A DNA stretch of 64,000 nucleotides, taken from NCBI GenBank assembly GCA_009103225.1, contig RHPI01002048.1, positions 299,702 through 363,701 of the forward strand, in the 5' to 3' direction. Every line of letters begins with the position of its first letter. The first letter of the stretch is position 1. A program made the position numbers and the translations under genes. Shown here one piece after another: positions 16,081-60,800 of the stretch. This DNA is from Chlorokybus atmophyticus. Lineage: Eukaryota; Plantae; Mesostigma and Chlorokybus algae. The notes beneath the pieces are model-generated. The model saw nothing but the letters and a program-made list of their open reading frames with translations, did not search any database and was not told the DNA's origin.

Positions 16081-16510
16081 NNNNNNNNNNNNNNNNNNNN
16101 NNNNNNNNNNNNNNNNNNNNNNNNNNNNNNNNNNNNNNNNNNNNNNNNNNNNNNNNNNNNNNNNNNNNNNNNNNNNNNNNNNNNNNNNNNNNNNNNNNNN
16201 NNNNNNNNNNNNNNNNNNNNNNNNNNNNNNNNNNNNNNNNNNNNNNNNNNNNNNNNNNNNNNNNNNNNNNNNNNNNNNNNNNNNNNNNNNNNNNNNNNNN
16301 NNNNNNNNNNNNNNNNNNNNNNNNNNNNNNNNNNNNNNNNNNNNNNNNNNNNNNNNNNNNNNNNNNNNNNNNNNNNNNNNNNNNNNNNNNNNNNNNNNNN
16401 NNNNNNNNNNNNNNNNNNNNNNNNNNNNNNNNNNNNNNNNNNNNNNNNNNNNNNNNNNNNNNNNNNNNNNNNNNNNNNNNNNNNNNNNNNNNNNNNNNNN
16501 NNNNNNNNNN
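16081..16510. other. Assembly gap (430 N) flanked by poly-C homopolymers
   Basis: N run with C runs of about 20-26 nt on both sides. Confidence 0.99.
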
Positions 16511-39228: not shown

Positions 39229-39320
39229 GGGCATGTTGTAGCAAAATCATGCATTATGTATCTGTAGCAGGGAACAATGTTACAAGTAGGGTTAGTGTTG
39301 CAACGTGATAGCAATTTGCA

Positions 39321-40676
39321 CTACATGAATTGTTCCGCTAGTAGGTCTCTGACCAAGCTACCAGTGTTGTCCAGGTTGTCATTGTCTGCAGTAGCATGCA
39401 GGGCCATATCTCCATCAGCATCTAGCGCATAGTCTAAAGGCTCCTCCCCCGCTCTAACACAGAAGTTGTGAAGTACACAACATGCACCAATAACATAAGG
39501 CACGGACAACACGTCGCTACTGATAGTCTCCTTCAAGATGCGCCACCTGCTTTTTAGCACCCCGAACGCTCGTTCAACAGCCATGCGTGCGGACGAGTGG
39601 CGGAAGTTGAAAACACTCTGCCACTCAGGTAAAGCATCACGCTGTCCAGGGTAGGGCACGATCAGGTGTTGAGTTAACGGGTATGCAGCATCACCGAGAA
39701 TGTAAGGGGTCACACGATCACCAGAGTCAAGTGTCAGGATGGGCTCTTGCATGATGGTCTTGTCTTGGTAAATGGATCGATACAACCCGGAACTGCTGAA
39801 CACCCTTGCATCATGCACACTGCCGGGCCAGCCAATGTCGATATGGGTGAAATGCAGGTCGTAATCGACCACGGCCTGCAGCACGCATGCAATTTTATGT
39901 ACGACACAACTTGCGGCGACATAATGCATGGGTCATACTTGCATAGGTTGCATAGATAGGTACACGCTTACTTGAAGGATGATGGAGTAGCTGCCTTTGC
40001 GGTTGAAGTAATCAGCAGCGTGTGGAGTAGTCGGCTTCTTGATCATAATGTGACTGCCATCTATAGCGCCTACGCAGCCTGGGAATCCTTTACCCTCCCA
40101 ATGCGCCATTATTACTTGCCTCAAGCGCGCACCCTCCGGCCATGCTATTAAGGCACGCAGTTCTGCACTGACAACTCGCACAAACTGCTCACAAATTTGG
40201 CAAGCACTAGCAGTGCTTACACCCATCAACTCACCTAACACATGATAAGGGGTACCGTGTCCAAGCCTATGCAACCCTATGGCAACCCGCTTATGCAATG
40301 GTATCGCTTCTCTAAAGCGTGTATCGATTTTAAATAACTCAGTGTTAGATAAGGCCTGGCACAATGCATTGAATGAAGCTGCACTCGAACGAAAGTGAGT
40401 CTTCCACATAGCATCAGGCCAATGTACAGACACGACTCTATCAAACCACGCTTGTGTCCGCGGAAAGCAATACCAAATGCTGACATGCTCTCGCATCGTA
40501 GCAACAGCCGCCCATGCAGTGCTTGTGGAGTGCATGTCCTCTCCATCTGCTGGCAAGGATAGCAAACGCTGACGCCGAGCTTGGTGACTGGTCAACGCCT
40601 GCCTGATTGTGGCGATCAACGCCCCAATGATGGCCAGTAACATGCCTCGCATTACTGCTGCTGCTGGAGCATCCAT
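39321..40676 (-). CDS. PIF/Harbinger transposase (HARBI1-like DDE_Tnp_4 nuclease), 2 exons
   Basis: FREAIPLHKRVAIGLHRLGHG, FPGCVGAIDGSH (D), YFNRKGSYSIILQ|AVVD, GWPGSVHDARVF, ILGDAAYPL (D), FNFRHSSARMAVERAFGVLKSRWRIL (E), ACCVLHNFC. A 96-bp GT-AG intron lies at 39876-39971. Open throughout. Confidence 0.95.
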
Positions 40677-41649
40677 TGTGACTCTGCACACACAAAACGC
40701 TAAGAACTGACTGGACTAAATGAACAGCAACACACGCACACGCACAGGTCGGCTCTGCACACACATGCATATGCCAACTCTCATTGTGCATGCGCGAGCA
40801 CCCCCCCCCCCCCCCCTCCCCACACACAGCCTTTACGCTCACACACACGCACTCACTCGGCACACACATGCACAACACATGAACGGAGTCCGTCTCTGCA
40901 CACATAGAACCAACACACACTGACACATACACGCACGCACGCTGACTCTGAATCTGCACACATAATGACCCCTGCGCTCACGCACACACATGGACACGTA
41001 CGCATGCCTACCTGCCGTTGCCGACTTGCAAGCAGCTGTTCCCACCCACATGCTGCCCCCCACCGCCGCCACCCACCACGCCGCCTTTTAGGCCGCCTCG
41101 GCCGCCTCCCGTGTGAGCAAACCCTACACCAGTATCGCGGGAAACGACGCAAACTTTTGTTAATCTCACTGCCAAAAACATAGTCTGAACCCGGCAGTAA
41201 GATTAAGGGGGACGATTGCTTAACATGTGCTAACGTGGCAAGGTTAGGCGCTGTTAACCTTCGCACCTTTAACCTTAGATGTAAAGACCCTCTTAATTCG
41301 CAAGGCGCGGGGGCCGCGACCTGCCCTGGTCCAGCCGCACGGAACCCGTGCTGCACCACAGTGGTTCACTAGTTCGCAGACTGAGAGGCGAGCGACCAGC
41401 CTTCAGTCAGGAGGCTCGAGGGGTCTCAGTCTGCTATTCATTGCATAAGGCATTCCGACGCGATTTACTCCGTGATGACGTAATGATACAGCGACTGCTA
41501 ACGGTTGTCACTCTGATGTGACGTTCATGGGTATGGTCTGGTGTATCGGTCAGAGATGTGTGTCGGCGACTGACAACGCGATGACAGTCGATAATGTGTG
41601 CTCGATTGACGTCTGCGTCGGCATTGAGCGGCGTCATTGGAGTTGGATG

Positions 41650-42534: not shown

Positions 42535-42842
42535 TGCGACTACCATGAGTCACACGACTTCATGCAGCTTCCAAATAAGCAGGTGGACTGAGGCTGCTTG
42601 CTTCTAAGTGTTGTGTTAGTCTGCATGTGTTTGCTGCAGATATGTGGTAGTCTAGCCATGTACATGACATCCTGGGTAGTGTGTCTAACAATGTGTATAG
42701 TTGTGTGCGTTTGCTTTGTGTGTAATGACTTGCGGGTGGATGTCCATGTTCTAGCAGTGCGCATACAGATTGCATACATTGTACACAGTGTGATATAGCG
42801 TCGCAATGACTGACAATTGCTTTCAGCGTATGTCCTGGGGTG

Positions 42843-43334
42843 CTACCACGCTATGTCAGCAACCTGCACATGGTCCAACCATGCATGGACGTTGAATGTT
42901 GGCTCATCTTCTTCATCTGCTGACAGCTGATCTTTATCCTCATACTGAGTGGGGCGCATGTTCCCGTCCTGTGCCTCTGGGTTTTCTTCTGATTCTGAAC
43001 TACTAGTGTCTTCATCATCTGTCAACTTAGCTGATGGTTGTGTTTGTGTGGGCTCCACCTGCGTGGGGGCTTGGGTGTCTCCTTGATTCTGACGGTTGAG
43101 GCAGCCGCAGCTGGGCCCGCATCGGCTGCCATTCTTTCGGCATTTGCACTGCCTTGTATTGCATCTATTCTTCTTACAGTTGCAGCCATGCAACAAGAGT
43201 TGCGCTCTGATCTTGGCAGCTTCAATGGTCTCCGGAGTGTCGATCTGTGCCTTAAACAGCCCGTCCACAAGTACATATCCATACTCTAAAAGGGGTGGCA
43301 GCTGCAACTGAGCAGTACAGCTTTGCAGCCACAT
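42843..43334 (-). pseudogene. 3' end of Academ-like transposase/XPG gene (Cys-rich zinc-finger tail), separated from its 5' part by the 14.5-kb insertion
   Basis: MWLQSCTAQLQLPPLLEYGYVLVDG...LLHGCNCKKNRCNTRQCKCRKNGSRCGPSCGCLN followed by an acidic tail. It joins in frame to ...LELHAKRSIWVVA at 57863. Confidence 0.75.
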
Positions 43335-43520
43335 CGTCGCAATATGTTTTCCCTGCCGTCCGACTAAATAATGGCAACGGCCGTGCACTTGAGGACACTA
43401 ATTTAGACTGTCGTGGCTCAGGCCACCTGTAATCTTGATACAGGGACCTAATAATAACTTTCGTTACTGTAAGGCCCTTTTTGTTACTATTTAGTCTTTA
43501 ACAGTTGACTATGCCTAACT

Positions 43521-43800
43521 AACAGGCGCCTGTTAATCACCTATCAGGCCTTAACAGGTGACTTTATATAATTAACAGGCACCTCTTAGTCACACACCAG
43601 GCCTTAACAAATGACTTTGTGTAATTTACAGGCAACTGTTAGTTACACATCAGGCCTTATTAGGTGACTACAACAATCATAATCAACGGGCACCTGTAAG
43701 TTACACATCAGTCTTACATTGGTGACTCAGCCTATGTGACAGGCACCTGCAGGTTACACACCAGTCCAGCGCAGGCGACTAAGCCTAATTCGCAAGCACC
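43521..43800. repeat. Degenerate about 53-bp subterminal tandem repeats (about 5 copies) at the left end of the Plavaka element
   Basis: Unit about aacaggcrcctgttagttacacaycaggccttaacaggtgact starts at 43521, 43574, 43627, 43685 and 43738. Confidence 0.85.
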
Positions 43801-44160
43801 AACTAGGTAATTATCGACAAAATAAGGCATTCTTTAACAGCTGAAGGTGACTAATGCCTAACTGTCGTCATATGTATTTGCATAGCTTGACTACACGCAA
43901 CTGTCATTGACTTCCAGCATTGTTATGTGCCTGTGCTGTGTACATGTACCTGAAATGTGTACAGTGTCTCTCTAACACTTGCCAAGGCTTGTAGTTCGAT
44001 TATGTGACTCGAATGCAGTTCTGTTGTATATCATAGGGATGCAAGTATTAATGTGCATGAGCATAATGACGATTGACTGAGCTGGTTTAAGATGCACAAC
44101 ACTCAGTCACAAGAGCCTTGTAGCTATGTACACTACCAGCTAAACGGACTACCAACTGCG

Positions 44161-45989
44161 CTACAGCTCCTCTCCATCATCGCTTTGCTCGTCATTACGG
44201 AACAAAGCACCACGCGCTGGGGCATGTGGAGGAGACGCCGGAGCTTGCTCTTCCTCCTCAAACGGTTGTGCCAGCCAATCAAATGCCGCTTCTGCCTCAG
44301 CGAGCGGGTCACGAGCTGCTGTCTCTTGCGGCCGGCGCCGATTGGGATCTTTCAGGTATTCGACACAAGATGCAGTGCGGCGTTTCACAAGGGTGAATGG
44401 CTGGAGGGTTGCGTACCGTTGCCTCATCTCCCGCTTCATTGACATGTTCATGGTGTTGATTTCGCTGAGGTACTCTTCATGTGTGTCTATGCTGGCAGCT
44501 AGGAGAGGGTCTCCATCCTTGCCCTTCATAATGCGCTCCACCTGCGCAGTTTACAGGCATGTCTTAGTGGCATCGAAAGCCACTATTCACTGCAACGCGT
44601 CTGCAAGCCTGTAGTTTTGGGGCTACAGCACTCCTGAATTGCTAATGCTGGAGTTCAGAGTGCTCACCGTAAGCAACAGGTATGCGAGGTGGTTGACTGT
44701 CGGCTGCCGGCGACCAGGTGTAGTGACGGCGTAAGACCAGCATTGCACGATCATTTGCCAAATTATGGGATTGCCTCATTCATAGATGTGTCTCCTCCGC
44801 TCCGGGTCTGCAGTGTCGGTCACCTCAAATCTCCGCCATGACTTGTCTGCGACAGTCATACCGACAAGGTATTAGTCACGAAATAGATAGTTCAAGTTGA
44901 GCCTGCACCAGGCTAGAATAGTGCCTGTGACTTACTTTGGAGCGCGTTGCGCATCTGAGCTTTTTGGGTCTCGGGGTCCATTAGGGCGTCGATGTGCCTG
45001 ATCGAATTGGTTACAATAGGCGAGATGAGTACGTGTGTATGGAGGCTGAGTAAGAAGGCAGTGTTGCATAGCAGACATGGTGGTAAGGGACCCAACTCAC
45101 TTGCGCTTGTTGCTGTTAAACAATGTCCACTTGTACTCCTTCTCAAGAACATGCTTGATCTTGGTGACGTTCTCAGACCGGACCTGCGTAGCTTTCTTCA
45201 GGGCGACACTCCAGTGGAAGGGGCGCTCCTTGGGAGTCCAGTACACCTCATAGAACTTGGCCTCATCGGCCTCGTCGTCATGGTCGAAGCCAACTACCTG
45301 TCACGGGCAGGTTGGTCAGTGTCACAGTGCAGTGCGGTCATGAAGCATTCACAGCACCTGACACATGACGTTACGAATAGTGTCCTCCTTGGGATAAATG
45401 TGGCTCTCTACCCAGTGGCCGTTTATGATTTTAACGACGGCATCTCGCAAATGCTGTCCACAGAAGAACAATTTGTTACACACATACACACAGTGTCACA
45501 GTGTCACACAGTGCTTACCTCGTTGCCAATCTTCCACTTGCTTGGGGAAGGGTTGCTGACGGCCGAGGTTGCCACGTCACGGCCAAATGCGTTTGGGTTG
45601 GGGGTTCCAATCGACCCTCTGCAAGCACAACCACATGAGTCATGCTGCCAGCCATGAAAGATGCAACCCTCACAGTTGCAAAAGAAGAACAACGTGCACA
45701 GTGTATCCAGAACGCATGCAGTGAGTCACTGTGCTAGTCATGATAGAAGCAAGCATCCAAGTTAGAAGTTGAGCAAGAAGCAACGTGCACAGTGCAGCAA
45801 GAACGCATGCAGTCTAGCTTGCCCTTGCGACTGCGGTGTTTGGTGGAGTTGTTGTGATGTGCTGGGCGTTAGCGCGGGGTCTTGCTGCGATTGGTTGGCG
45901 ACGGTTGCCTGGTTGAACACTGGGGGCAATGTGGACAACTGGCGCCGACCTCCACGACGAGGTGCACTTACGGATGGACCACGAGGCAT
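44161..45989 (-). pseudogene. Orphan multi-exon cargo gene of the Plavaka element (unknown function; one premature TGA)
   Basis: Phase-consistent exons MPRGPSVSAPRRGG... / GSIGTPNPNAFG...KWKIGNE / HLRDAVVKIINGHWVESHIYPKED / VVGFDHDDEADEAKFYEVYWTPKERPFHWSVALKK / ... / WRRFEVTDTADPERRRHIYE*GNPIIW / VERIMKGKDGDP...DDGEEL*. The first intron is probably GC-AG. Confidence 0.6.
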
Positions 45990-46299
45990 CTCTCCAACTG
46001 ATAGTCGGGTGCCGCCTGTTTAGCTGTAAGTGGCGCTGCCGCCTCCAACGCTGCCGCCGCCAGTTGGCCCGCCCGAAGGTATGAGGCGCGAAAACGAAAA
46101 TGAGGCGGTTTTGAACGTGAGTCCCGCACTAGAGTCGCACTTGTAGTGCGTCCTTGCTCCTATGGTTGATGGTACGACTTATGCATTCGTGCCATGCATG
46201 CTTCGTACAACCATTGTTACCAATGGTTGTGTCGTAACATTTATGGTACGACAGAGGCATCTCTCGTCCAACCCCAGCGATTGCCGTACAATGGCTCTA

Positions 46300-46319
46300 T
46301 CGTACCATGCATGGTACGA
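46300..46319. promoter_or_regulatory. Perfect palindrome TCGTACCATGCATGGTACGA within a GTAC-rich intergenic cluster (about 46165-46330)
   Basis: Seen directly. It lies between divergent cargo genes. The regulatory role is inferred. Confidence 0.5.
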
Positions 46320-46429
46320 CAGAGGCATTGCTCGATCAGCCCAAATGGGAGTTAGCATGCACTCACCCAAACACGCTTCATTGATGGCCGGATAATGGCA
46401 CGCAGGGGCACCAGGTCGATGACGGGTCG

Positions 46430-49400
46430 AATGTCAGGCTTGATGGGCCTGGGTTCGACTAGGAGGCGGAGGACCAGGAGTCGGAGGCGGCGGCGGCGGC
46501 GTGGCACATCTTGCGAGAAGTTGTGGTCGTAAGAGTTCAAGCAGCGAAGCCAGCTACTACCGGTCGCCACGTCATGGATCATGGCAGGCGTCAGCAATGG
46601 GGCTGTCCAACATGCATCACCAACATTGGACAAACCAGCAGGCAAGCCATTAAAGACCATCTTCACACAGAGAGCTGCTTGGTGGCTCGCTTTCTGCAAC
46701 AGGGAGTGGATCAGGAGCTGCAGTCCTTTGAGCCCCTTGTCAGAACTATGCGGGACCAATTGCGGCTGTGGGAACAAGCACAAAGGAATGCAGAGGTACG
46801 CTCAACAGTCACATGCATTTCCTTGCAAGAGCAATTTGTTTTTTAGCGCAGTCCATGTGATATATGTAGCGTGGCTGCAGGCCTCCACTATTCACCCATA
46901 CCCACCCTACAGTCAAGCCGACATTGCGGAAGCAAGAGCAGATAAGATAGAGCTGGGCGGCGGTATGTTGTTGTCAATCTCGCTGTGCATGTTGACTGCA
47001 ATGTCGGCTTGAATGCATGCCTACCTTTGCATGCTAGGATGTGCGTGAGCGTGCGAAGTCGCGCGCGCGTGCCGAACGAAGTAGGCTGGGTTTGAGCACA
47101 GGAGCGCGTGGCCATTCGTCCGGCATTCAACCAATAGTGCATCAACCAGCAATGACGCAGTCCATGCAATCATTCGTGCATCAACCAGCAATGCCGCAGG
47201 TGACTGTTCGAAGCAACCAACTGATGACGGTGTGACGCAGTTGACTATTGCAATTGCAGTGTCGCAAGCATGCAGCTAACCCACATGTGATTGGTTGACA
47301 GCACCACAGTGCACTAAGTCCTGTTGAAGCTCCTATGCAAGCCTGGATTCAATCCCACCAACTGGTCCTTCAATCCCACTTGCTGATGGGCGCGGCGGCA
47401 ATGCGGCATCAGTTTAACATGCATGTTGGCCTGTTGAATCCCGACATGTCCATTGGGGCCGTGGCGCATGATGTGCCCATGGCTCACGAACTCCGTGACG
47501 AGTCTGCGATCGAGGGTGGCGAGGAGAGTGCACCCAACCACCTTGTCAGCCCCCATGGCTTCCCCTGCTCCATGCAGCTCACGGGCCATTGAGGTAAGTC
47601 GCTGTCTTTTATGCTCGTGCCTTGGTAACAATGCGTCAGGCACTGCATAAGCTTATATTCGTCCTTNGCAACATTGTGAGCCATCTTATCCTGGGTCCTG
47701 TATATAGCCCCCCTTGCTGCATGCACAAGTGGTCTCACCTGCAGCTCCTGCTCCCCTCCCAGCCAGAGCGCAACCACTTTCCGCGGCACCAGTCCTTCGT
47801 GCATTGCCATCTCCGCCACGAGCAGCACCGGTGATTGCGGGGCAACAATCCTTCTTGCCACCACCGGCGAGACCACAGCACAATGCAACAGCTGATGTGG
47901 CTTCTGCACCTACCTTACCCCACCCGCTGCAAATTAAAGCCGGCAGTCTGCCCCAAACTCAGGTACTTTATCAGTCACTGTGACTCTTGCCGTCCACAGT
48001 TGGACACACCATGTGAGTGCTGTATGCGCATGCAGCAGGGGTCACCACCTGCCAGCGAGTCATCAGAGGAGCTGGCCGCAACCCGCATACGGCCATCAGT
48101 CATGCTAGGTGGCCAGCTCGCCTCATGGGACCACTTCAATGCGCCAACGGATGGTAATTGCTTCTACCATTGTGTATATTGCGCCAGGCCATTCATAGCG
48201 CAAAGTGTCCTGGATGATCACAAGTGCCCCAGCTCGAGCAGATTTTGGGCCATGCTGGACACCATGGACAACGACGACAGGGGGCACACTCTCCGCAAAA
48301 ATCACCGCCAAGGCTGTCGATGCAGGCGTGGCGAGCAGAATCCTAGACTTCTGCAGAGCCACTGGTGCCGCGGGAGAGATGGCGCAGTATTACGACAAAC
48401 TGCCTGCGACCATGTTGGCTGATATCAACTGCAACATTGACCTAGCCATGGCCAAGGTGCGACAGATCGTGCGGAGAAAAGATGTGTACGTCGAGCACCT
48501 GCAGATGACCATGTTTGCCAACAAGCTGGGCTTGTTGATTGGCTGCGTGACCGTTCAGCGCGAGCATGGGGAGTGGGTGCCACGGCCCGGCAGCGCAGTT
48601 TGGGTTGGAAATAAAGAAGCCCCCAACTCAGTCCTGGTGGTGGGCAACACTGCTCCTGATGAGCCAGAAGCACACTTTTGGCTCCTCAAGCCTGCAAGCA
48701 CCGAACAGTGGTCATGGCCTATGCATGAAGTGCCACCGGAGGTAACACACCTGATCGGAGAGTGGCGGAGTGGCGTTGCCAATTCCGCTACCACCGGCTG
48801 TGACCCAAAGTGCTGCGCCAACGCCTCAGGCCTCGCCTTCGTGTGCTAGGCAAGAAGTAGCCGAGTGTTCTGCACAACCTGCCTCCCCTCAACCACAGCC
48901 ACATGCTCGCAATCCCAATTCAGCACCCTCTCTTCCTGCCGCGGAGACTCACTTGCCACCGCACTCTGACCATCCGGAGGCATCTCCATCAAAAAGCAGC
49001 TGTAGCTCGCCCTCTCCCTCTAAGCTTGCCACATTGATCCCAGCCTGTCTTGTTGGTAAAGAGATTGATCGAGGTGTCCTGAAAGCTGCGCTGAAAGACA
49101 AAGGCTTCATGCTCGACCTCATGAAGCAACATGAGGTCGTGGAGGAACGGGAGGCAACCAACAAGCGCAAGGCTGTGGAGCAAGAAGATAACGCCTTACC
49201 TCCTCTGAGTGACAGTGCCACGGAGAGCGCCTGCCAGGATGTGCAGGGTGACAAAAAAAAAAAGAAGAAGGTTGTTGGAACAAAGGGCGCTGACAGGATT
49301 AAAAGGGGCTGACTGTGTGTCCTGAGTAGGCACAGGCGGGTTTACAGCGTCAAGTGGTTGCTCAGCATCGTCCAGAGAGACAGCCGGTGCGGCACGAGCT

Positions 49401-50365
49401 GCCTAAGCTCAAAGCACCGACGCGCAGACGCTTTGGGGGGCTGACTCGTAGTGCAAAGGAGTTGATCACCCTACAGTACGCCCAAGACGCGCTGCATCAC
49501 CGCATGCGGCATGCCTCGAGGTGGGTGACGAAAGTTTGCAATAAGTGGGAGCAAACGCGGAGAATGCGGTCTAAACAGACCTCTGGGGATTGGCCGTGGT
49601 TGGAACCCATACACGATATGGCCATCCGTGGTACGTTGTTGCCCCTCGCCGTCCTCGATATGATGGTGCTGTTGCTGCCGCAGCACCCCGGCAATGTGCA
49701 AGAGCTATCTGCGGAGCAGAACTTCGACCTGCTGCAGCAGATGTACCTGTCGATGTCGACTAATGCGGGTCGAGATGTGTGCCACTACCTGAGCAAACAT
49801 ACTGGGTGGCAAGTAAAACCATTCGAGCTGTACTTGGCATGCTTTGGCTGGCAGTGGCTGTATGTCATACGGCACGTCGAGCTGATTCTGTGGAAGCTCG
49901 AAGAAAATGACGATGCGGGGGAGTACACGAGTGACGACAGCCATGTCGAGGGCCTGGATGAACGCATGCTGGACGAGACCACCAAGACCAGCAGGTGGTG
50001 TATGGCGTCAGGTGGGCGTCAGGTGATTGAGCAGGCAGTGGAGCGTTATGCTGCGCCATTTAGATGGGTGTCGTTACGCCTGCGACGCGATAACAGAGTT
50101 TGGTGGCAGAGGCAGCTTGCACACCCGCGTGCACCATGTGTGCTGATTTGTCGCATTGAAGAGCCACCCCCCCCCAGCGGATGGGGAGACGCCCTGTTGC
50201 AAGAAAGCGATGTGCCATGTCTGCATCATAGCACATCAGAAGACTGTGGCAAATAAATCAAAGAATCTACAAGCGTGTCCATTCTGCAAGCAACCTCACC
50301 CGTTTTGGTCGCCACGCCTGATGCAAGACGCCAACGTGTCGGCGGTGATTTGGCCCCCGCCTTGA
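46430..50365 (+). pseudogene. Cargo gene(s): N-terminal C2HC zinc finger, OTU-like cysteine protease domain, C-terminal RING finger; frameshifted
   Basis: WGCPTC...SRQAIKDHLHTESC at about 46600. OTU Cys motif APTDGNCFYHC (Cys 48159-48161), helix VYVEHLQMTMFANKLGLLIGCV and His motif PEAHFWLL (48673). RING PCVLIC...TPCCKKAMCHVC...ACPFC is broken by a shift at the C9 run 50167-50175. Whether this is one gene or two is not resolved. Confidence 0.6.
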
Positions 50366-50689
50366 TGCCAATTGTGCATGTATTGTAGTTTTGTGTTGGC
50401 TTCCTGTGAACCATGTAGGTACATGTATAGTTGCAGCATGGTGCATGGTGCACCAGAGATCTGCTGTTGTTAGAAGCATTGGCTGTACATGTGTATGATG
50501 ACTGCCCGGCGCATGAGTCAGTGCATGGCTTGCATACCTCGCTGGTTTAGAGCGTGGTTGACAGCAACAAACTCGGACAGCGCTCTGGGTTCCATGGCAT
50601 GACAGCACAGTATTACTCTATGATCGTGGTAGTATGCGAGAATCCTTGTACTGTAGTACCATTAACAGATGGAGTACCATTCATGTTGA

Positions 50690-50713
50690 TGCAGTACCAT
50701 GCATGGTACTGCA
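50690..50713. promoter_or_regulatory. Perfect palindrome TGCAGTACCATGCATGGTACTGCA upstream of the Tudor-MTase gene
   Basis: Seen directly, with further AGTACCATT copies at about 50655 and 50673. The regulatory role is inferred. Confidence 0.5.
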
Positions 50714-50848
50714 ATAGCGTATAAGGTACAGTCGTGCTTCACTTGAAGTTTGACCCATTTAGGGTTCGTAAGCTGGCAACCCTAAATTGATGCCCATACC
50801 CTAAAGTCTCGCTCAGTTTGTGGGCAGCCGTGCCGATTCCTATTTTGC

Positions 50849-52577
50849 ATGATGTCGGCGGCAGCAGTTGAATCACCCTCACCTAGGAGACCATGCTTGG
50901 TGTGCCCACAATGCAATGCGTACGTATGTGCCAATGGCCGTAGGCAGCAAATGCGAGCACACTTGACCGAATGCCAGAGAGTGCAGACAGTGTGCCACGG
51001 TTTTAGTGCTGCTTGTTGGCATCACACCACACACAATGTCGACGTGTTTGGCTGCCGCCTCGGCCAAGTGCTGTGCAAGAAACCCGAGTTTTTCCATTGC
51101 GTGCAGTGCGTGTGCGAATCGTGCTCGCGCTCATGCTTCGAGTGGCGAGGGGAACCCATGCGCTTCTTCACATGGACAACACCGGGACATGTGGTTAGTG
51201 GACAGGTGGTGGATGCTGAGGAGGTAATCCACAAGAGTGGACCGCGACGTATCACTGCATGTTATGTTGGGCGTATGCTTATTTCATGCATGTTGAAGCT
51301 GTTGTCGCATTTACAGCAATCTTGCACGGTGTGGGCGTGGGCAGTTCTATCCCCTGGCCGCTGTAGAGGAGGCAGACCATCGACCATTGCACAGCGCACT
51401 GCATCGGCTGCGGAACGCAGTTCAGTTGGGATGCGAGCAGCTGATTGGTGTGAGTGTCATGGTGCATTAGCCGCTGGACGGGGAATGGTATGCGGGCGTT
51501 GTGGAATCATTCAAGCAAGCGTCAGGTCAGCATCGCTTCGTGGCGTGCGAGATTCAAGACGCATCATATATGCATGGTGCAATGGAAAATGCCTTTGCAG
51601 GGCAGCACCGTATAGTATTCGATGACGGTGATCGACCACAAACCATCAACTTCAAAGGGCACAACGTACTCGCGTACACATCAGTTGACGGGGCACGCCA
51701 TGTTCTGCGCGCCGGAGGGGAGAACGTCAGTCGCAAAGTAAGCCCGGACGACATCATTGTTAGTCCCTGGCCAGCACCACGGCCAGCCTTGACCACATAC
51801 ACGCCATTTAACAACAAGCTGGGACGCACATGAAGACCAAGGGCACTCGACCTATTCTGCGGCGGTGGCGGTGCCAGTGTCGGTCTATACCATGCAGGCT
51901 TTGACCTGACCGGGATGGACATAAGTCCCTCCTCTGAGTACCCGCTGCCCTTCATACACCGCGATGTATGCACCCTGAGTGCAAGAGAGCTGAGCGAGTA
52001 CGAGCTCATTTGGGTCAGTCCACCATGCCAGGCCTATTCAGGTGCTATCCCGGCACCTCAACGGGCGGCACATGGCACATTCTGGAGACACCAGGATATG
52101 ATACCGCTCGTCCGACGTCTGCTGCTTTCAAGCCAGGTCAAGTTTGTGATTGAGAATGTGCCAGGAGCAGCTTCCTCATTCAGACCCAATCTGTCCCTTT
52201 GTGGCACGATGTTTAGCCTATCAACTTTCCGACACCGTCTGTTTGAGACACAGCCAGTGGTAGCTACCCCACCAGCACGCTGCTCGCACGCGGGCAAGGC
52301 AGTTGGACTGCTATCGCCGCACCTGTCCGCTAGCGCGAAGAAGACAATCGTGACATCAAACGCGCCACAGCAGATGTACCCGGTCTATGGCCTTTCAAGC
52401 ACCAGGGGCGGCATTGCTGCGTGGCAAACAGCGCTGGGAGTGCCATGGATGACCTCGGCCGTTTCCATAGCGAATGCAGTTCCTCCCGCAATGGCGGAGT
52501 GCATAGGGCGTCTCATGCTTGAAACAATGGATATGCGCTGTGACTACCCTCCTGTGTCATGGAACTATGAGGCTTGA
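50849..52577 (+). pseudogene. Zinc finger-Tudor-C5 cytosine DNA methyltransferase fusion; two in-frame stops (TAG 51468, TGA 51831)
   Basis: CPQC...RAHLTEC at the N-terminus. Tudor LIGVSVMVH*PLDGEWYAGVVESFKQASGQHRIVFDDGD (intron 51526-51600). MTase motifs I LDLFCGGGGAS, II GMDI, IV SPPCQAYS, VI IENVPG, VIII FRHRLF and X IANAVPPAM all lie in one frame. Confidence 0.85.
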
Positions 52578-52783
52578 GTGTGGTGCACTGTATTAATGAT
52601 GCTTAATGCCACACGGCGGACTGATTGTTGAATGTTGCATGGATCATTCGATTGTGGTGACAGTTGTGCAGTGACAGCTGCCCGGTATTGTATACGTCCA
52701 CATGCAAAAGTCTTAGCATACGATTAGCAATGCCTGACTGACTGATATGCCCCAAACTCAGAGTAGTGAGACAAGTACATGTG

Positions 52784-55700
52784 TCACGTGGAAGTGCAAT
52801 GAACGTTCACCCAATACTTGCCCTCTTGTACACGGGCGCTGTCCTTGTTAAACATGGGGAGCAGCTGGACAATGCCTTTTACTTGCTGCAGTGTCACGAC
52901 ATCGAGATGTGGACCGCCTCGACGCTTTTCCCATTCCAGAGCGATGCACTTTGTGTCGCTCATCACATCCAGCTTCGTGTACCAGCGGACAAACACGACC
53001 TCCTTCCACACGCGCTCGCCGCTACCACCCCACACCACCACGCGCAGAAAAAGGAGTGCCTGAGCCCACCACGTCACGTTCACACCGTCCTCATCACCTT
53101 CCAACTCAAGTGTAGAGAACCAAGGCCGCCCATGGAACATCCCAGTTGCGCGCGCCATGCTGACTCCTGATGTCATGTACACCGCTGCGCCTCCGTTCAC
53201 CACGCGAACAGCACGCCACCCGTCAGCCAACTCCAGTTGTTCCCTCCTCAACCAGCTGTCTAGGGTGGCAGGCAGCTTGTCGGCGAATGGAGTCTTCAAG
53301 GCGACTTGGCGGCTACGCGCAGATCCGCTCCAGTACGGGCTGGACTCCCTCCTTGTCAGCACATCCATCCGTAGCAACTTGTCCGTCTTCTCCATGACAT
53401 TACAGCACTGCTGCCGCGCCTGCGCCATGACCGAGCGCATCTCGGGATCCACGACCATGCCATCCTCTTTCACATATTCCGCACAGCTCCATGCCTTCAG
53501 GATACGTGCCTGGTGGTCCCGGTTGTTGCCACCATGCGCCCACCGTTTGATATTTTGGGCGTGCGTCTGCTCCATGCGCTTGGCGCTGAACCAATCTGGG
53601 TGTCCACTGCGGACAATTGCCGGCCCAAAATGAGTGAGCTGATGCATCTTCTCGATCTTCCAACCTGACTTCTGTGCAGAATATGACGACAGTAGCGGAT
53701 GCAACACTGCAGCTTTGAAGGCAGCCAGCTCGTTGTCGGATGTGGTCAGGGTCTCTCTTGTGTGTTCATGAGCCTTCAGCAACTTCTTGTTCCACTGGGC
53801 AAGCGATGTGGCAGCAATGGTGAAGAAATCGTTGCCCTCACTGTCGAGCAGCAAACCGTCTGCGAGGACCGGCAGCAGCTGCAGCACCGCCACTTTCTCC
53901 ACCACCTGAAAGGAGTGGTCGGACAGGAAGAAATCTACTGTGCTTGTGGGTGCCTTGAAGTGCGAAACCCGCAGAGAAACTCGCCTTGCATGCATTTAGC
54001 CTGTGCACATCTGCTCGTGAGCACGTGTTGTTGGCTTTTGTGTTCAACACAAAAGCAACACCAAAGACGTGCCTGGCCTGCAGAATCTGTCTCGTGGATG
54101 GACGCATTCGTTCCTTCGCGGCGTCGAACACAGCAGCAAGCAGGTGGTCAATGATGCCTCCCAGCACATGCATTGCGTCAGGGGCAAGACGAGAGTAGCA
54201 GTCAGCTCCCGGCACCCGCGACTGTCGCCAACCCCACAATGCATTCTGTTGCCAAACCACATTGCCTGGTTTCACGGAAAGCCATTCATCCTTACGAATG
54301 CCGATAATTTGACCATTACCTCCTCGACAAGCATGGAGTGCTGCTCTTTGAAAGCCTTGGCTGTCTGGCGTGCATTCCTAACACCGCTATGCAGGTCCGC
54401 CCGCAGCTGACATATTGCTGGTGTGTAGAAGGCCTCGGTTCTCAATTCCCGGTCCTCATCCATCTCCAACAGATCTGATTTGGTGACGAGACAAACATCG
54501 CAAGGATGTCGTGTTTGGTTGCCCGACACAGTGCGTGCGAGTGTGGCAGTCTCCTACCACACGACAAACTCAGATATTCTACTGACAACATCCTCCATGC
54601 ACTGTTTGCTGGCAGGCTGCATCCGGTTACAACCATTCATGCCCACAACCTGCAAATCGCTAATGTAGTTAGCAAGCGTGGGAAACACACGACGCTCGAT
54701 GCATTTCGGGTCGATGAGCTGCAGACCTTCCCAACTCGCCCGCTTCACATCCCCTAACACTACATTCAAAGCGTCATGAAAAATCTCACGTTTTTGAATG
54801 GAGAACGATTCCTTGCCCTGCGCTCAGGTGGGATGCCCGGCCACTGCGTGAACCACCGGCAGAAGCGCTATCATAACAACCCCCATGTTGCTAGCATACA
54901 TGTCCCAACTGTAGTTGGCAAGCGATGCCATCAGAGGGTAGCCAGAGCGCTTGCCCGCGCTGTCCAGCGTGGTCTTGTCACTGTACAGAATGGCAGGCGC
55001 CAAGTAGGACGCTTCCCCCACCTCTCTCCTCAAATCCACCTCCACATCCTTCCACCAATCGCCCGTGGAAGGATGGCCAAAGCTGTGCTCGTCACCAGTG
55101 TACTGGAGATTGAAGCCATTGGCGGCATGTGGATTGCCATACAACCGCGCGAGCCATACCTGCTCCGACCAAGAGCATTACTTACTATGCTGGCCTCAGA
55201 ATAGATACTGCATCGATACTGCATTAGGTACTGCATTTCACAGACCTTGGCCGGCATATATGTGACGCAGATGTCCTGATCCTCAGGGTCTCCAGGCTTG
55301 CGCAGGTCAGCCGTCACGTAGTTCTGATACGGCAGCACACTCGCATGTGCATATGTGACATGGCTCTGATGGTTGAAGCACATGCACCGCACACCGTGAA
55401 CACACCTCAGACTGAGAGAAAGCAATCGTGGTCCGGAGGTAGCTGGCCGCATGCACACCGGTCTCCCACTGGAGCTCTTCCGTCAGGAAGTGTGCATTTC
55501 GGATGCACTTGATGATCCGCCCCATGTCGGAGGCCGACAGGCCTTGGCCGTTGTTGCACTGCACGAATGCCACTGCAAGAGCATGCTCCGAGCCATACCA
55601 CCTGGATTCCGACGCGTGCGAAGGGACGCCTCCACTTCCATGTTGGCGTGCCACAGGTTTCTCAGGCACACGCACACATCGAAAGCCCTCGTTCACTTCC

Positions 55701-55930
55701 TCCTCCTCCTGTTGCTGCTGTGCGTGTGTCTCCTGGAGGAATCCTTCAGCATCAAGCATGTGAGCATCCTGGATCGAACTCCCCGGTTCAACATGACCCG
55801 CATCGTACTGTAATGGACGCTGGCCGACATACAGCTTGATCTGCTTGCACACCCTGCTGCTAATAATGTGCATGTAGACCGAGCTGCGTGTGGCGAAGCG
55901 CATGTGGCAATACGGACAAAGGACTCCCAT
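52784..55930 (-). pseudogene. Plavaka-family transposase with N-terminal C2H2/C2HC finger; interrupted by a stop and frameshift(s)
   Basis: CPYCHMRFATRSSVYMH, WLARLYGNP, HPSTGDWW...PAILYSDKTTLD...GYPLMASLAN...ALLP, FFHDALNVVL...RRVFPTLANYISD, CDVCLV, PDAMHVLGGIIDHL, KMHQLTHFGPAIVRSG...SAKRMEQTH..NIK, RATGMFHGRPWFS...VFVRWY. These are the conserved blocks of Plavaka transposases as recalled from fungal members. Confidence 0.82.
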
Positions 55931-56087
55931 ATCTCACTACTAACGTCGACACAGGTGTCGCCAATGTAACCTGCATCATATCCAGCAACACGCACACCCG
56001 CCGCCGCCGCCGCCGCCGCCACCGCCACCGCTACCGCTACCCTTGCATGCCAGAGGCGGGAAACTTGGCCGCCAGTCACTGGCTCCG

Positions 56088-56258
56088 TCGTACCATTATA
56101 ATGGTACGATCGAGCCATTGCACGTCCAGGGTGAGTCTCTGGATATATATATATACATATATATTCTGATTGAACCGTTTCAATGGTACGAAGATGCCTT
56201 TGCCAAAAGGTATAGGCATTGTACAAAGGTACCATTGAAATGGTACCTTTGTACAATG
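56088..56258. promoter_or_regulatory. Palindrome TCGTACCATTATAATGGTACGA (56088-56109) and 20-bp-stem hairpin CATTGTACAAAGGTACCATT-GA-AATGGTACCTTTGTACAATG (56217-56258)
   Basis: Seen directly. Located between the transposase start (55930, -) and the orphan ORF at about 56420 (+). Confidence 0.55.
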
Positions 56259-56421
56259 GCAATGGCAGTTCGTACCATTGACAACTCTGGCAATGTCAGT
56301 CCCCCTGCGCATGAAAACACCATTGATAGCTCCGCCAAGCTATGCCCTTACAGGGGCGTGATGCCGAGGGTATGTGGCGTTTGGAAGATCGTTGGCGGCG
56401 CTGCCAGGGGCGTAGTGGGCA

Positions 56422-57295
56422 TTGTGGTCGAGGTCCGGGATGAATTCCATGTTCGCACAGGGCGGGCAGGGTGCCGGAGGGGTGTCCTCGGTGTCAAACC
56501 CCACCAAGACTACCAAGGGCACATCCAATGACAACAGTGACTCGGGCGATATCTTACAGGGCTCCCCCTCCGAGTGGGCAAAGGCACACCACAATACTGC
56601 CTCTAAGAAAATCCGACCCACCAGCAGCTGCGACCACGGCGACATGATTGAAGGGACCAAACAAGACTGGCATAACCAAGGTGGGTTACGATGCACTGTC
56701 AATGCCACATGCTAGGGTTCTTTTATCTTGCACATGCACAGCCTCAAGTATCTTGCACTTGACATACATTGTCAATACGACATGCACACCCTCATGCACA
56801 ACCTCCAGTGTCATGCACATGAACAGCATGACCAATCTCGCAAATGCACAGCCTATTTCTACTTGCGGGAGCTCACAAGTCGCAAAAGAGAAGCTGCGGA
56901 GTCAAACGAACGGGTAATCTATGACCTAGTTTAATGTTTCCAGCGGTAATTAAGCAGTATGCTTGCAGATTGCCATGTTGGTCAGAGTGAACCAAGAGCA
57001 GCGCGGCAGGCTGACTGTCTGCCTGGCGGAGTGCAACAAAGCGGAAGACGAGGTAAGCGTGTGTATGCTGATGGGCTAGTCCTCTGGCAGCACGCCACTC
57101 TTACAGCATTACCAAATGCAGGTGGTCACTCTCAAAGCGACCATCAAGCGCATGCGCGTGCACGGCAAGGCGCTGACATTCAAGCTGAAGGACGAAGTAG
57201 CCGCTGTACTGTCAGCGAGCGAGGCAGCGGATGAAGATGACTCCGGCGTTGAAGCAGAAGACTCGTCGGAGGAAGAACAGGAGGAGGGGGTTTGA
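56422..57295 (+). CDS. Small spliced orphan cargo gene with basic/coiled-coil middle and acidic tail
   Basis: Likely exons MFAQGGQGAGG...KQDWHNQ / ELTSRKREAAESNERVIYDL / ...QVVTLKATIKRMRVHGKALTFKLKDEVAAVLSASEAADEDDSGVEAEDSSEEEQEEGV*. The exon structure is uncertain. Confidence 0.35.
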
Positions 57296-57499
57296 GGAGG
57301 AGTTCTGAGGCAGGCACCACGGGTTGACAAGCTGCGCATGAGTCCGACAGCTAGACTCAATGTTATAGGGTAGTTTCATGCGCAAGTCGGCTGCTCAGTT
57401 GTAAGTGGACATACTCTCACCACTGCCCGTACATTGTATATATTGTGGGCTTTTAGGTGCAAGACCAAACAATCAGTCCAAGGTTTGTACAAGCTGCAT

Positions 57500-57862
57500 G
57501 GCATGTTAGTGTTGGCTTACGGCAAGAATTGCCAACTTTTGTCAAACGGCAAGGGTCACATATTAACAGCAGTGTAACGGCAAAGAAACTGCCGGCTATT
57601 GCTGTCAGCTGTCCGTAACTACCGGCTAACGGCCGTCTGTGCACATCGACCAAAGGGTAACTGGTTGACAACTCTCGGCCGGTTATGGCCATTGACAACC
57701 ACTTTCGGCCCGCGGCCGTCTGCGTCAGTTCACTTAAGCCAACGGCAAACCCAACAGTTCAAAAGTAATATTCCAGGCAGCGACAGGCAGGCTCAGGCAG
57801 GCTCAGGCACCAGTCAGTCCCTCAGTCAGTCCTTAGTCAGTCACCGTGTAAAATTTGCGACG
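57500..57862. repeat. Right subterminal region of the Plavaka element: dispersed AACGGC motifs and CAGT/CAGGC short repeats
   Basis: (A/T)ACGGC recurs at about 57519, 57546, 57577, 57628 and 57741. The same motif occurs next to the left terminus (ctgccgtc about 43354, aacggccgt about 43377). Confidence 0.6.
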
Positions 57863-60800
57863 ATAGCGACCACCCAGATGCTCCTTTTCGCGTGCAACTC
57901 CAGCGCTGAAGGTGAGTGCATTTCTTCCTTGCTGTCGCCAACTTCATTCCATATACCTTGTGCTATTGTGTGGAACGCTTGGCGAAGTGCCTGCAGGTCC
58001 CCTGTCGAGGCTGCGACACCATTGGTGTCGTAAAAGATGCTAGCAGCACTATTGTAGCTTGGGAAAACTACTTTGTGCTTTGCGAAGTATGCGCACCCGA
58101 TGAGGCGCATCAAGACTGCAATGCACTCATGCTCATTGAGGTCAGAACAGCGTGTGATAAACTCTGTTTCTCTTGCAAGTACATCTGATTAGAAATAGAT
58201 CTTGCTGATGCCTGCAAAATAGTTGGTTTAGTCGCATCCCGTGCCCGTGAAGAATTGCAGCAAGAAGTACATCTGATGGTGTGATGTGGCGTAGTTGTGG
58301 AATCTGAGCCAAGTGAGTGTATAGGGCCGACAGGTCGATGAAGGGAGCCCTTGCAGTGCAGTGGGAGTTGGAAGAATACTTTGCGTTCTGAGGTCTGCCA
58401 CTGCTCCAGAGCGGACAGCCCTATGATCGACACATCTGTGTCTGATGAGTAGATGAGAGCAGTTGGGTAACCACACAGCAGAGCATGGAGCCATACTCTG
58501 CTGTCTGCTTCCGCATGGTTGCACTGATACGCACTGCTTTTAAAAGATTGGAGACCATTGACCGTTTGTGCTACCACTCTCGCATTGTAGGCAAGGGAGC
58601 CTGACCCATCAGCAATGATGATGGTTTGGCCAAGTCTCAGATAAGGAGATACCAGCTCAGGTAAGTGCGTTGTCAAGAGGCAGCACAGGCTACGCTTCGT
58701 AGTGCGGACAGCAAGCAGATCCCGTCAGCACCTGGGGACCTCGCTCTCCAGAGTTAAGGTGCGTGTTGATCTGCCAGCACCACTGTCTCTGCAAGACTGC
58801 AGGCTTCTTTTGACGCCAATGGCGTGTGCAGGATCGTCAAACACCACGTGCAGGGATCGGACGCTGGGGTTGAATAAACGAGGGAGCAAGCAAGTGCGAA
58901 CTATATGAAGCAGATAGTCCCGCATTGTGACCACACCTGTGCTGAAGCCTTTGTTGGTGATGAACATGCCTCTAGTGATAATGGCTTGCACACCTGGTGG
59001 GTGTTTGAGCACCTGGAACGTTGGGCATGTGGTACTTAAGAGGTTGAGGAACTTGGCCTTGTCCCCCTTCCTCATGTCTCCCTTTTTTGTCAAGATAGCC
59101 TTTGGGATGGCCTAATAAGATGCAATCACTGCCTCCACCGGAGCACCAGATTTTGCCAACTTCTTCAAGACGAGTGTCTTGGTTTCTTGCATGCGTTGCA
59201 ATGCCCTCCCTTTCTGCACAATTGCTTTTTCACTTGCATACTCTTGAGTCCAAACCTCCTGCCTATGTTGACTTCATGCATCTCATGGCAATGCACTGCT
59301 TTGACAAACAGCGGGAACTGGTCATGCCCAAGTGCGTAGTGCTTGCCTAGGTGAGCTGTTGCGGATGGGCTGGCTTCCCTTCCAGTCACGATGAACGAGT
59401 TGTGCTTCGCGGTGGACACTGAGCACCTCAGATGTCTCCAGAAGATGCAGCATGGCTTCCACATTAATAGTAGTTTTGTCGCTTGGCATTATGACTGTGT
59501 CAACAGGTGCTGCAGTGTCCTCCTTAATTCTCATCACGTGCAGCAGCCTCTTCAGCCCCACAGCTCGGTGGGACACATGAGCGGTTTTGCGTGTCATGTA
59601 ACCAGGATTTAGTCTTGTCAGCGTGCTGTTCAGATCCTTGTTGATCAAGCACTCGTGGGCCTCATCTTGCGCCACATTGCTGCTACTCTTGCCCGTGATG
59701 CTGATTGTGAAGGCACCCTGCTGCAGTTGCTCCAGTATATCAGGTTGCTGAATGTCCACTAAGTGCTGACTCATGAGGCGCTGGTAATGTGGTCTATCCC
59801 ATGCGAAGGATAGCGGAGAGAGCGCCTTGTATGATGCAACACGCAAGTCCCATTGGCTGGTGCGCAGGGTAAAGTACAACGCCAGATACGCTGCGGCATC
59901 ACAGGTGGTGAAGTTCCACCACAATGCCCAAGTAGCATCCTCCTCCGCTCTGTTGGCACCATAGAACGAAGAACTCAGTGCAGTGTCTGGGGTTATTGAG
60001 GTCGATGTCCTCCTGACTAAAAATGCCAAGTTTCTCCAATATACCTGAGTGAGATTGCATGAACATGTAGAGCTGCTACCTATAGATGCCCTCCCAGCAC
60101 TGCAACATGTATGCGTGCATGCGCTTCCAATTGGAACCCTCTGCCAGCATGTTGCGTGCAGGGATACCAGCACACACACACACATCTCGTCCAGTCATGC
60201 ATCCAAATACACTTTGAAGAGGACAGGTAACAAGTTGTACATAGCGTGCCAGTCGCCTAGGAGTAGGAGCAGCAAGTCCCAGTAGCCAGGTTGAGTGTGC
60301 TTGAGTGTTGTCATAAGGCTGAACGTTTTTTGATCCTCCGCCACTAACACCTTACAACCTGTCAGATCAACACGAAGTTGCTCGTGCAACTCAACAGGGC
60401 AAATTTCAAGTGGTTTGGCTTGTCCGGGGTGAAGGGCAGTAGCGGCATGTAACACACCTGATTGGCAGAGGCAGCGTCCCCACCTCCCAATAGGGATTAC
60501 AGCACATCCTTCAGCTTGTCTTGATTGAGCTCAGGCACTTCAGTCCTCTTTCACACAGTGTTGTGCAACGCCATTTGAAAACTGGCAAAGCTGTCAGCTT
60601 CGTTATGTGTCTGACATGTAATCTGCTCGCTTGCAGGTGGTGGCATGTTAGTGCGAGGCCTGGGCAGCTGTGGAGGTAATTTTGCTGTGTGGTTGATGTG
60701 GAAACATACCAGCTTGTGACAGAGTCCTGAACCTTTGCGGGCACCTCTTCCATGCGCACCGATCCAAAGTGTGCAGGCTTGGGTATAGCAACGTGAGTGG

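Follow-up and report, generated by a model that had tools for sequence, protein, structure and literature searches.

A decayed copy of a probable Plavaka-lineage DNA transposon with a C5 DNA methylase and other chromatin-type cargo in Chlorokybus atmophyticus

Introduction

The giant Plavaka elements of the red algae Bostrychia moritziana and Chondrus crispus carry the accessory genes PAG1–3; such elements account for a third of the Bostrychia genome and are found in further red algae (bioRxiv 10.1101/2025.02.11.637652). In fungi, Plavaka (PlavakaA and PlavakaB) and KDZ transposons carry TET/JBP dioxygenases as cargo, and Plavaka families make target-site duplications of 2 or 3 bp (PMC12730594). 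Plavaka elements are also present in the green alga Auxenochlorella (PMC12633428). Here we describe a 64,000-nucleotide stretch of Chlorokybus atmophyticus contig RHPI01002048.1 (the window), in which positions 43335–57862 are probably one decayed copy of a multi-copy, approximately 14.5-kb DNA transposon of the Plavaka lineage. As red-algal giant Plavaka elements with other chromatin genes have been published, this is a new cargo for a known kind of element: giant algal Plavaka with chromatin cargo are already known, and what is new is the cargo found here, together with the probable viral origin of the methylase in it. The first-pass annotation of this DNA had grouped Plavaka with KDZ and placed it mainly in fungi; the former view is outdated (PMC12730594), as is the latter, given the elements of red algae (bioRxiv 10.1101/2025.02.11.637652) and green algae (PMC12633428).

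The element resembles the red-algal giant Plavaka in its Plavaka transposase, its very large size (14.5 kb here, 17–19 kb there), its several chromatin- or DNA-modifying accessory genes, the repeats beside these genes and its high copy number; most red-algal copies are degenerate, and the analogy with VANDAL anti-silencing has likewise been drawn there. Its cargo is different. The red-algal cargo comprises an N6-adenine methylase with SET, a ParB-like protein with 2OG-oxygenase and one unknown protein, whereas here it comprises a Tudor-linked C5 methylase of giant-virus type and an OTU/RING-like frame; neither N6-adenine methylase (PF01555) with SET nor ParB-like with 2OG-oxygenase gave a Pfam match on element open reading frame (ORF) pieces of at least 80 codons. 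The host there is a red alga, whereas the plant-type Tudor gives the host here a green-lineage look.

With fungal Plavaka the element shares the PF18759 transposase, a 2-bp duplication, a CxxC motif past the second catalytic D and an accessory gene related to 5-methylcytosine (5mC). The fungal termini are TGT..ACA or CATCA..TGATG, with CA..TG in most CMCT, whereas here they are CGTCGCAA..TTGCGACG. These CG..CG termini depart from the fungal-subgroup/CMCT pattern, which places the element in a lineage outside PlavakaA/B and does not exclude it from Plavaka. Furthermore, the fungal TET/JBP cargo removes or oxidises 5mC, whereas the cargo here would write it; no ORF, whether in the left 4.4 kb or elsewhere, matched the Tet_JBP profile at E ≤ 10.

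Transposons are the usual targets of DNA methylation, and a few retrotransposons own a methylase. Those encoding DNMTs include SymbioLINE-Dnmt and SymbioDIRS-Dnmt3 of Symbiodinium and KnitGypsy-Dnmt3 of Klebsormidium nitens (PMC5890265). Like the present element, they are algal or protist mobile elements with a C5 methylase of their own whose catalytic residues are conserved. In the retrotransposons the domain is Dnmt3-type or lineage-specific and lies inside a polyprotein or ORF1, whereas here a DNA transposon has a separate spliced gene of the short viral or bacterial type, joined to a Tudor-like segment. The Tc/mariner transposon Mariner-1_OLpv of Organic Lake phycodnavirus encodes an endonuclease and, next to it, a C5 DNA methylase (PMC3627910). 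It too is a cut-and-paste DNA transposon with a C5 methylase and a connection to the giant-virus world; it differs in residing in a virus genome, in its restriction-like endonuclease partner, in having no histone reader and in belonging to another transposase superfamily. Finally, VANC of the Arabidopsis VANDAL (Mutator-like) elements is also a transposon accessory protein proposed to act on the epigenetic state of its own element. VANC, which contains neither a methylase nor a Tudor, OTU or RING domain, brings about loss of methylation by binding to specific sequences, whereas self-targeting by the present cargo is a proposal only. Literature searches aimed at this combination turned up no DNA transposon reported to carry a Tudor-linked C5 methylase, or one with an OTU/RING frame.

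The element and its insertion site

The element is bounded by an exact 8-bp terminal inverted repeat (TIR), with AT immediately outside each end. The limits first assigned to it are exact, as CGTCGCAA stands at 43335 and its reverse complement closes at 57862. The features within and beside these limits are as follows.

43333–43334: left candidate target-site duplication AT, read directly
43335–43342, plus strand: left TIR, CGTCGCAA, read directly
43476–43780: left subterminal imperfect 53-bp repeats, 4 copies, 64–100% alike
44077–45657: ORFs initially taken for an orphan gene, with no Pfam family at E ≤ 10
46165–46342: palindromic cluster 1 (GTACCAT..ATGGTAC, CGTAC core), a candidate promoter region, from word counts
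46533–47831, plus strand: further ORFs (46533–47009, 47299–47589 and 47598–47831), which may be a second orphan gene or belong to the OTU/RING gene as 5′ exons
47835–49309, plus strand: OTU-like reading frame, from motifs, broken by the insertion of one A at 48297 and the loss of CC after 48784
49330–50365, plus strand: reading frame ending in a RING-like finger (50137–50287), broken by an extra C at 50167
50656–50730: palindromic cluster 2, 120–190 bp upstream of the methylase ATG, from a 16-mer
50849–52577, plus strand: predicted Cys-rich/zinc-finger–Tudor–C5 DNA methylase gene, from PF00145, motifs, the spliced Tudor match and the tree
52787–55933, minus strand: multi-exon Plavaka transposase gene of about 1000 codons, from Pfam PF18759
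56077–56290: palindromic cluster 3 with an AT-rich stretch, 150–360 bp upstream of the transposase ATG, from word counts
57855–57862, minus strand: right TIR, TTGCGACG on the plus strand, reverse complement of CGTCGCAA
57863–57864: right candidate target-site duplication AT, read directly

Minus-strand frames are open up to both ends (57844–58188 and 42846–43397). Deletion of 43335–57864, that is, the element and one AT (14,530 nt), restores a 271-codon minus-strand ORF, which is continuous with a Cys-rich domain of Tesmin/CXC-like type (PF03638, E = 3.7e-4, slightly below threshold). The element would have inserted into another transposon-like gene with duplication of 2 bp (AT); the AT/AT pair, known from this single insertion, agrees with the 2-bp target-site duplications of Plavaka. 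The flanking gene itself (42846–43334 plus 57865–60194, minus strand) looks like part of another mobile element, and ORFs upstream in it contain a HAEADSRVWLH...SSDTDV motif without any Pfam family. Blastn found no second copy of the element within the window.

The likeness between the two ends stops at 8 bp: a longer TIR was rejected, as were inverted shared subterminal words, which did not exceed shuffles. The right subterminal region (57780–57850) has short repeats different from those on the left, GGCTCAGGCA and CAGTC/GACTGA units, and the palindrome ACGGCCGT lies close to both ends (43377 and 57629).

Were these boundaries wrong, a smaller, transposase-only Plavaka would stand beside unrelated host or viral genes, and the 8-bp repeat and AT/AT would be coincidental. 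An 8-bp inverted match can indeed arise by chance when positions are free, and no gene can be recognised in the left 4.4 kb, which lies outside the read-contig test described below. We judge this highly improbable, because both flanking minus-strand frames reach the proposed ends without a stop and fuse in frame, because the cargo and the 3′ part of the transposase are evenly multi-copy in two organisms, with contigs that bridge neighbouring genes, and because the motif clusters extend over 46.2–56.3 kb.

A repeated unit, decayed in this copy

Positions 47700–53600 (5.9 kb) were compared with contigs from runs of two organisms. The region is present in runs of at least two organisms at 0.56–0.59 of its 31-mers, a share that fits a divergence of about 1.6%. 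In the two organisms 147 and 356 contigs align on it, with likeness ranging from below 90% (about 85%) to above 99% (up to 100%). Word depth is 71–358 in 30 of 30 bins, versus 3–8 for single variant contigs. One 1319-nt contig runs from the RING end across the intergenic palindromes into the start of the methylase gene, and between the methylase and transposase genes coverage is as deep as over the genes themselves. The coverage is contiguous and evenly high, and many diverged contigs from both organisms contribute to it. The methylase gene, the 3′ part of the transposase and the OTU/RING frame therefore belong to a single repeated unit and are not single-copy host genes. The first-pass annotation had proposed a transposon with chromatin-type cargo and named single-copy host genes as the outcome that would speak against it; we find instead hundreds of contigs that are 85–100% alike over 47700–53600. 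The proposal is further borne out by the position of the cargo inside a unit bounded by TIRs and target-site duplications, and by a palindrome common to three intergenic regions. It holds for the methylase gene and the OTU/RING-like frame as DNA; their biochemical identities are not supported to the same degree.

The window is draft-assembly eukaryotic nuclear DNA, with runs of N at 16081–16510 and 24510–25257 and single Ns at 34634 and 47667, a state that matters for the homopolymer frameshifts in the element. The frame changes of the OTU/RING frame are private to this copy: most contigs of both organisms have one A fewer at 48297 and one C fewer at 50167, and words with two extra C after 48784 account for roughly half of the depth in one organism and for the greater part in the other. 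The window copy is also 57–59 nt shorter than the majority at 49246–49305. In all, it has about 97 differences from the majority (about 1.6% divergence), with an A/T excess in the window (47 versus 17). A CpG-deamination signature was rejected, as 6 of 25 transitions lie at CpG. This copy looks dead, given three homopolymer frameshifts in the OTU/RING frame, in-frame TGAs in the methylase and transposase genes and the 1.6% divergence.

The Plavaka transposase

The Plavaka transposase first noted on the minus strand is confirmed by Pfam PF18759, which matches two consecutive ORF pieces in the same frame. The first, at 54827–55177, covers profile positions 76–165 (E = 4.5e-12, 46.3 bits against a cut-off of 26.3), and the second, at 54557–54823, covers positions 175–234 (E = 1.8e-6, 27.8 bits, above the gathering score). 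No other transposase family in Pfam matched the transposase ORFs. The enzyme is predicted to be a CACTA/EnSpm-related DDE transposase of the Plavaka lineage. Its ATG lies at 55930 and is followed by a C2H2-like finger at 55895–55918. The first catalytic D can be placed at 54965–54985, the second at 54650–54664, and past the second D there is a CxxC (CDVC) at 54491–54502; the H motif and the E are not placeable, the gene model being broken or unspliced there. The C-terminal ORF of 403 codons is intact. The Plavaka core peptide and the terminal 20-mer found no relatives among metagenome contigs.

An in-frame TGA (54824–54826) separates the two PF18759 pieces. An intronic position was rejected: the profile spans the TGA, and removing it by splicing would take an intron of only 36 nt. 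We therefore interpret this TGA as a nonsense mutation of the present copy. A TAG at 54554–54556 lies within a plausible 96-nt GT..AG intron (54554–54649). Reassigned stop codons were also rejected, because the in-frame stops are a mixture of TGA and TAG and the TAG falls within this intron. The frame change near 54290–54330 is more likely a frameshift, as an intron there would be 29 nt.

The Cys-rich–Tudor–C5 methylase gene

The plus-strand gene at 50849–52577 is predicted to have three exons (50849–51223, 51471–51525 and 51601–52577). Exon 1 encodes a Cys-rich segment that opens with a C-x2-C...H-x3-C finger (C-x2-C-x15-H-x3-C, 50894–50965). Past a 247-nt intron comes PLDGEWYAGVVESFKQAS, followed by a 75-nt GT..AG intron (51526–51600, acceptor cctttgcag) and then by GQHRIVFDDGD. 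Downstream, a 247-codon ORF (51834–52574) matches PF00145 (E = 1.4e-5) and contains motif I (FCGGGG, 51855–51872), motif IV (PPCQ, 52020–52031) and motif VI (ENV, 52152–52160), followed by FRHRLFE and ANAVPP; all catalytic C5 methylase motifs are kept, including the C-terminal AVPP.

The Tudor assignment depends on splicing. Against PDB entry 7DE9, the Tudor of Arabidopsis PDS5C/RDM15 bound to H3K4me1 (PDB), the unspliced piece gave E = 1.7, and the piece without the predicted 75-nt intron gave 23.4 bits and E = 5e-4 (PDB-size database), with 12 of 25 residues identical and the aromatic positions retained as W/Y/F. As this score was computed against the printed part of 7DE9 only and the splice was chosen by the analyst, it is supportive and not independent. 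Pfam Tudor families did not match the piece, and a single-sequence AF2 model of it was unusable (predicted local distance difference test, pLDDT, 37).

The Tudor frame continues for 53 codons to a TGA at 51831–51833, immediately before RPRALDLFCGGGG. Either this TGA is a nonsense change (CGA or TGG to TGA) or it is removed by a 162-nt phase-compatible intron (51674–51835); the position is not among the 40 best-supported differences of the read-contig comparison. The zinc finger–Tudor–C5 methylase initially annotated on the plus strand is therefore upheld in part. The PF00145 domain with its motifs is present, and the gene also has, ahead of this domain, a Cys-rich N-terminus and a Tudor-like segment. 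The Tudor identity draws on the spliced match to 7DE9 (E about 5e-4) without a Pfam counterpart, and the in-frame TGA between Tudor and methylase may part the two in this copy.

Ancestry of the methylase

A phmmer search with the methylase found relatives down to E = 4e-64. They are short bacterial or phage methylases of about 210 residues and a set of longer proteins, the latter at 42–48% identity; the search of representative proteins returned nothing above 50% identity. For eight of the longer relatives (P0001, P0002, P0123, P0124, P0125, P0126, P0132 and P0224) the contigs were looked up. Five of the eight contigs carry giant-virus hallmarks (DNA polymerase B, Rpb1 with an intein, topoisomerase II, ribonucleotide reductase or mRNA capping triphosphatase). 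Those of P0224 and P0123 are shorter and gene-dense, without recorded hallmark genes, and that of P0126 is too short for its viral context to be judged.

In a maximum-likelihood tree of 70 sequences, the element methylase, on a long branch, falls in an 18-row clade (ultrafast bootstrap, UFBoot, 95; SH-aLRT 92) that contains all seven proteins labelled as having a virus-like context. It is sister (94/70) to a subgroup whose members include P0123, P0126 and P0130, each with an MBD, and P0132, which has an MBD gene adjacent; P0224, another member of the clade, has zf-CW. The element methylase and the clade have in common a 9-residue insertion after PPCQ and a QMYPVYG motif, which are absent in bacterial-type sequences. 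Apart from the element, the clade of this catalytic domain is known from giant-virus-like contigs, so that the methylase was probably captured from a giant virus; the direction of this transfer is one that we infer.

The nearest viral relatives have the same design, a short methylase plus a reader. They differ in carrying zf-CW (P0224) or MBD (P0123, P0126 and P0130) instead of Tudor, in being intron-less and in residing in virus-like contigs, outside any transposon. Because these relatives carry MBD or zf-CW modules, the comparison suggests that chromatin readers have become attached to the short methylase scaffold on several occasions. Such reader-joined short C5 methylases are found in giant-virus-like contigs at L006:1639-2940, L008:2028-3050, L010:447-1616 and L011:9239-10534. 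The zf-CW is N-terminal in P0224 and the MBD is internal in P0123, P0126 and P0130, and in L011 the MBD is a separate neighbouring gene.

That the nearest methylase relatives lie in giant-virus-like contigs is also what an endogenised giant-virus remnant would give, with a transposon inserted into it and the methylase being viral DNA still in place. We give this hardly any credence. When the element was compared with virus-like contigs L001–L003 by tblastx, the methylase alone was in common, and Pfam scans of the element ORFs found no viral hallmark family. Moreover, the methylase gene has spliceosomal-type introns and a plant-type Tudor, and the unit is a 14.5-kb repeat with many near-identical copies.

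The OTU-like and RING-like frame

With three small corrections, the region upstream of the methylase gene reads as one frame at 47835–49309 and a second at 49330–50365, the latter ending in C-x3-C...CC-x4-CH-x-C...C-x2-C. The segment TDGNCFYHC (DGNCFYH at 48150–48170) resembles the Cys-loop of OTU proteases, and a His-loop-like EAHFWLL lies at 48667–48687, 172 codons beyond it. Pfam OTU (PF02338) matched neither OTU-like piece. Against PDB, phmmer returned nairovirus OTU domains at E of about 1, at the Cys-loop, a stretch that is also C2H2-finger-like; an Atlas search gave 0.87 to a cluster with 18% OTU. The single-sequence AlphaFold model was unusable (pLDDT 43), and Foldseek on it gave noise only. 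Thus the OTU protease domain of the first-pass annotation is retained for its Cys-loop and His-loop motifs, and lacks a Pfam match, a homologue or a usable fold.

The RING finger, likewise annotated on the plus strand, fares similarly: zf-C3HC4 matches its second half only (profile positions 17–40, E = 0.037, below the cut-off), and the first pair (CVLIC), with its C-x3-C spacing, shares a frame with that half only once the extra C at 50167 has been taken out. An Atlas search found no match for the region between the OTU-like and RING-like parts.

A zinc-finger-like C-x2-C...H motif is present in all three recognisable genes (55895–55918, 48159–48215 and 50894–50965), in the form C-x2-C-x12-H in the transposase and the OTU-like frame. 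In the latter it overlaps the putative Cys-loop, so that the finger and catalytic-loop readings of this frame compete. A 647-nt contig of X5, a putative RNA run whose nature is guessed, covers 48746–49333 at depth 43 and may hint at transcription. It spans the low-complexity linker past the OTU-like domain and includes the CC missing from the window.

A palindromic motif shared by the element genes

The heptamers GTACCAT/ATGGTAC occur 22 times in the window, 14 of them in three clusters inside the element (46169–46311, 50656–50703 and 56090–56272). Within the clusters the heptamers combine into palindromes; one of these, the 16-mer GTACCATGCATGGTAC, recurs without change at 46302 and at 50694. 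The word CGTACCAT occurs 9 times in the window versus 1.28 expected, a count reached by 0 of 100 shuffles, and 8 of the 9 lie inside the element. Because clusters stand upstream of the methylase and transposase ATGs, and cluster 1 in the gap ahead of the OTU-side ORFs, their placement suggests common regulation of the element genes. We take the CGTAC core to resemble the binding sites of plant SBP-domain factors.

These clusters also bear on whether the cargo does anything for the element. CACTA-type and Pack-MULE elements capture host gene fragments, and the cargo here could be inert passengers, captured once and amplified with the element to no benefit of the latter. Two observations would fit: all cargo genes are interrupted in this copy, and the OTU and RING are motif-level only. 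Against it, the frameshifts are private to this copy and most contigs read through, the methylase retains every catalytic motif despite its long branch, its gene is a three-module composite with introns and not a fragment, and the palindrome upstream of it is the same as that of the transposase. We consider inert passengers unlikely.

Proposed working and significance

The transposase would cut and paste the unit at its CGTCGCAA ends, and the element genes would be driven from intergenic regions with the common GTACCAT..ATGGTAC palindrome. In intact copies, the Tudor would guide the methylase to transcribed chromatin with H3K4 methylation, where the protein would write 5mC de novo. Its targets would include the element itself, whose epigenetic state would be modulated as a result. 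The first-pass annotation had likewise suggested that the cargo may set the methylation state of its own element or may counter host silencing. We infer enzyme activity, histone-mark specificity and benefit to the element from the domains and their arrangement. Tentatively, and as a possibility about which we hold more doubt than confidence, we propose that a C5 methylase, taken from a giant virus by a family of cut-and-paste transposons, became joined there to a plant-type, H3K4me1-reading Tudor. With the OTU/RING module and the palindromic promoter element, this pair would form a self-regulating epigenetic cassette, intact copies of which would write 5mC on transcribed chromatin, their own genes included.

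Several observations weigh against the main reading, that of a decayed copy of a multi-copy Plavaka element with chromatin-type cargo. At the level of the ends, the TIR by itself is weak proof, because the CGTCGCAA octamer is found 3 times in the window versus 1.7 expected and is not significant alone; the third copy (42799–42806, 536 bp left of the element) is probably there by chance, and it was rejected as an alternative end for want of extended similarity to either end. Only one insertion is directly seen, and the left 4.4 kb (43335–47700), outside the read-contig test, has no gene recognisable by Pfam or Atlas. At the level of the genes, the Tudor E-value rests on an intron deduced from the sequence, the TGA at 51831 may split reader from methylase in this copy, and the OTU and RING identities are motif-level, without statistically significant support. 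The OTU-like piece had no homologues in 5.8 billion proteins, nor did the 403-codon C-terminal ORF of the transposase in the same proteins or in viral contigs. Finally, some of the frameshifts may be assembly errors, since all three indels lie in homopolymer runs of a gapped draft assembly.

Were the proposed cassette real, a DNA transposon with a reader-linked 5mC writer of giant-virus descent would tie virus-to-host gene flow to cargo capture. It would also bear on the origin of reader–writer fusions resembling host DNMT3 or chromomethylases, and provide a compact, testable reader–writer pair. Because this particular copy is, by all appearances, dead, the value lies in the family.

Other features of the element and the window

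The first-pass annotation had counted two orphan genes in the element; these are better described as ORFs without a family. The 221-codon ORF at 44992–45654 has no Atlas match and an Atlas recognition of 998, in the range of non-proteins and unlike a real protein. The second candidate (about 46533–47009), examined by Pfam only, matched no family.

Elsewhere in the window, the gap at 24.4–25.5 kb is bordered by simple repeats of GA/TC type. Two host genes can be recognised, one with a VPS53 C-terminal domain (4654–5262, plus strand, E = 3.8e-13) and one for a SelO protein adenylyltransferase (18110–18781, minus strand, E = 1.1e-34). Another transposon lies to the left of the element: a PIF/Harbinger-type transposase is encoded on the minus strand at 39324–40715 (DDE_Tnp_4, E = 9e-31; Plant_tran, E = 1.8e-15), and within the same region (38341–40715) it is adjoined by a 295-codon ORF on the opposite strand.

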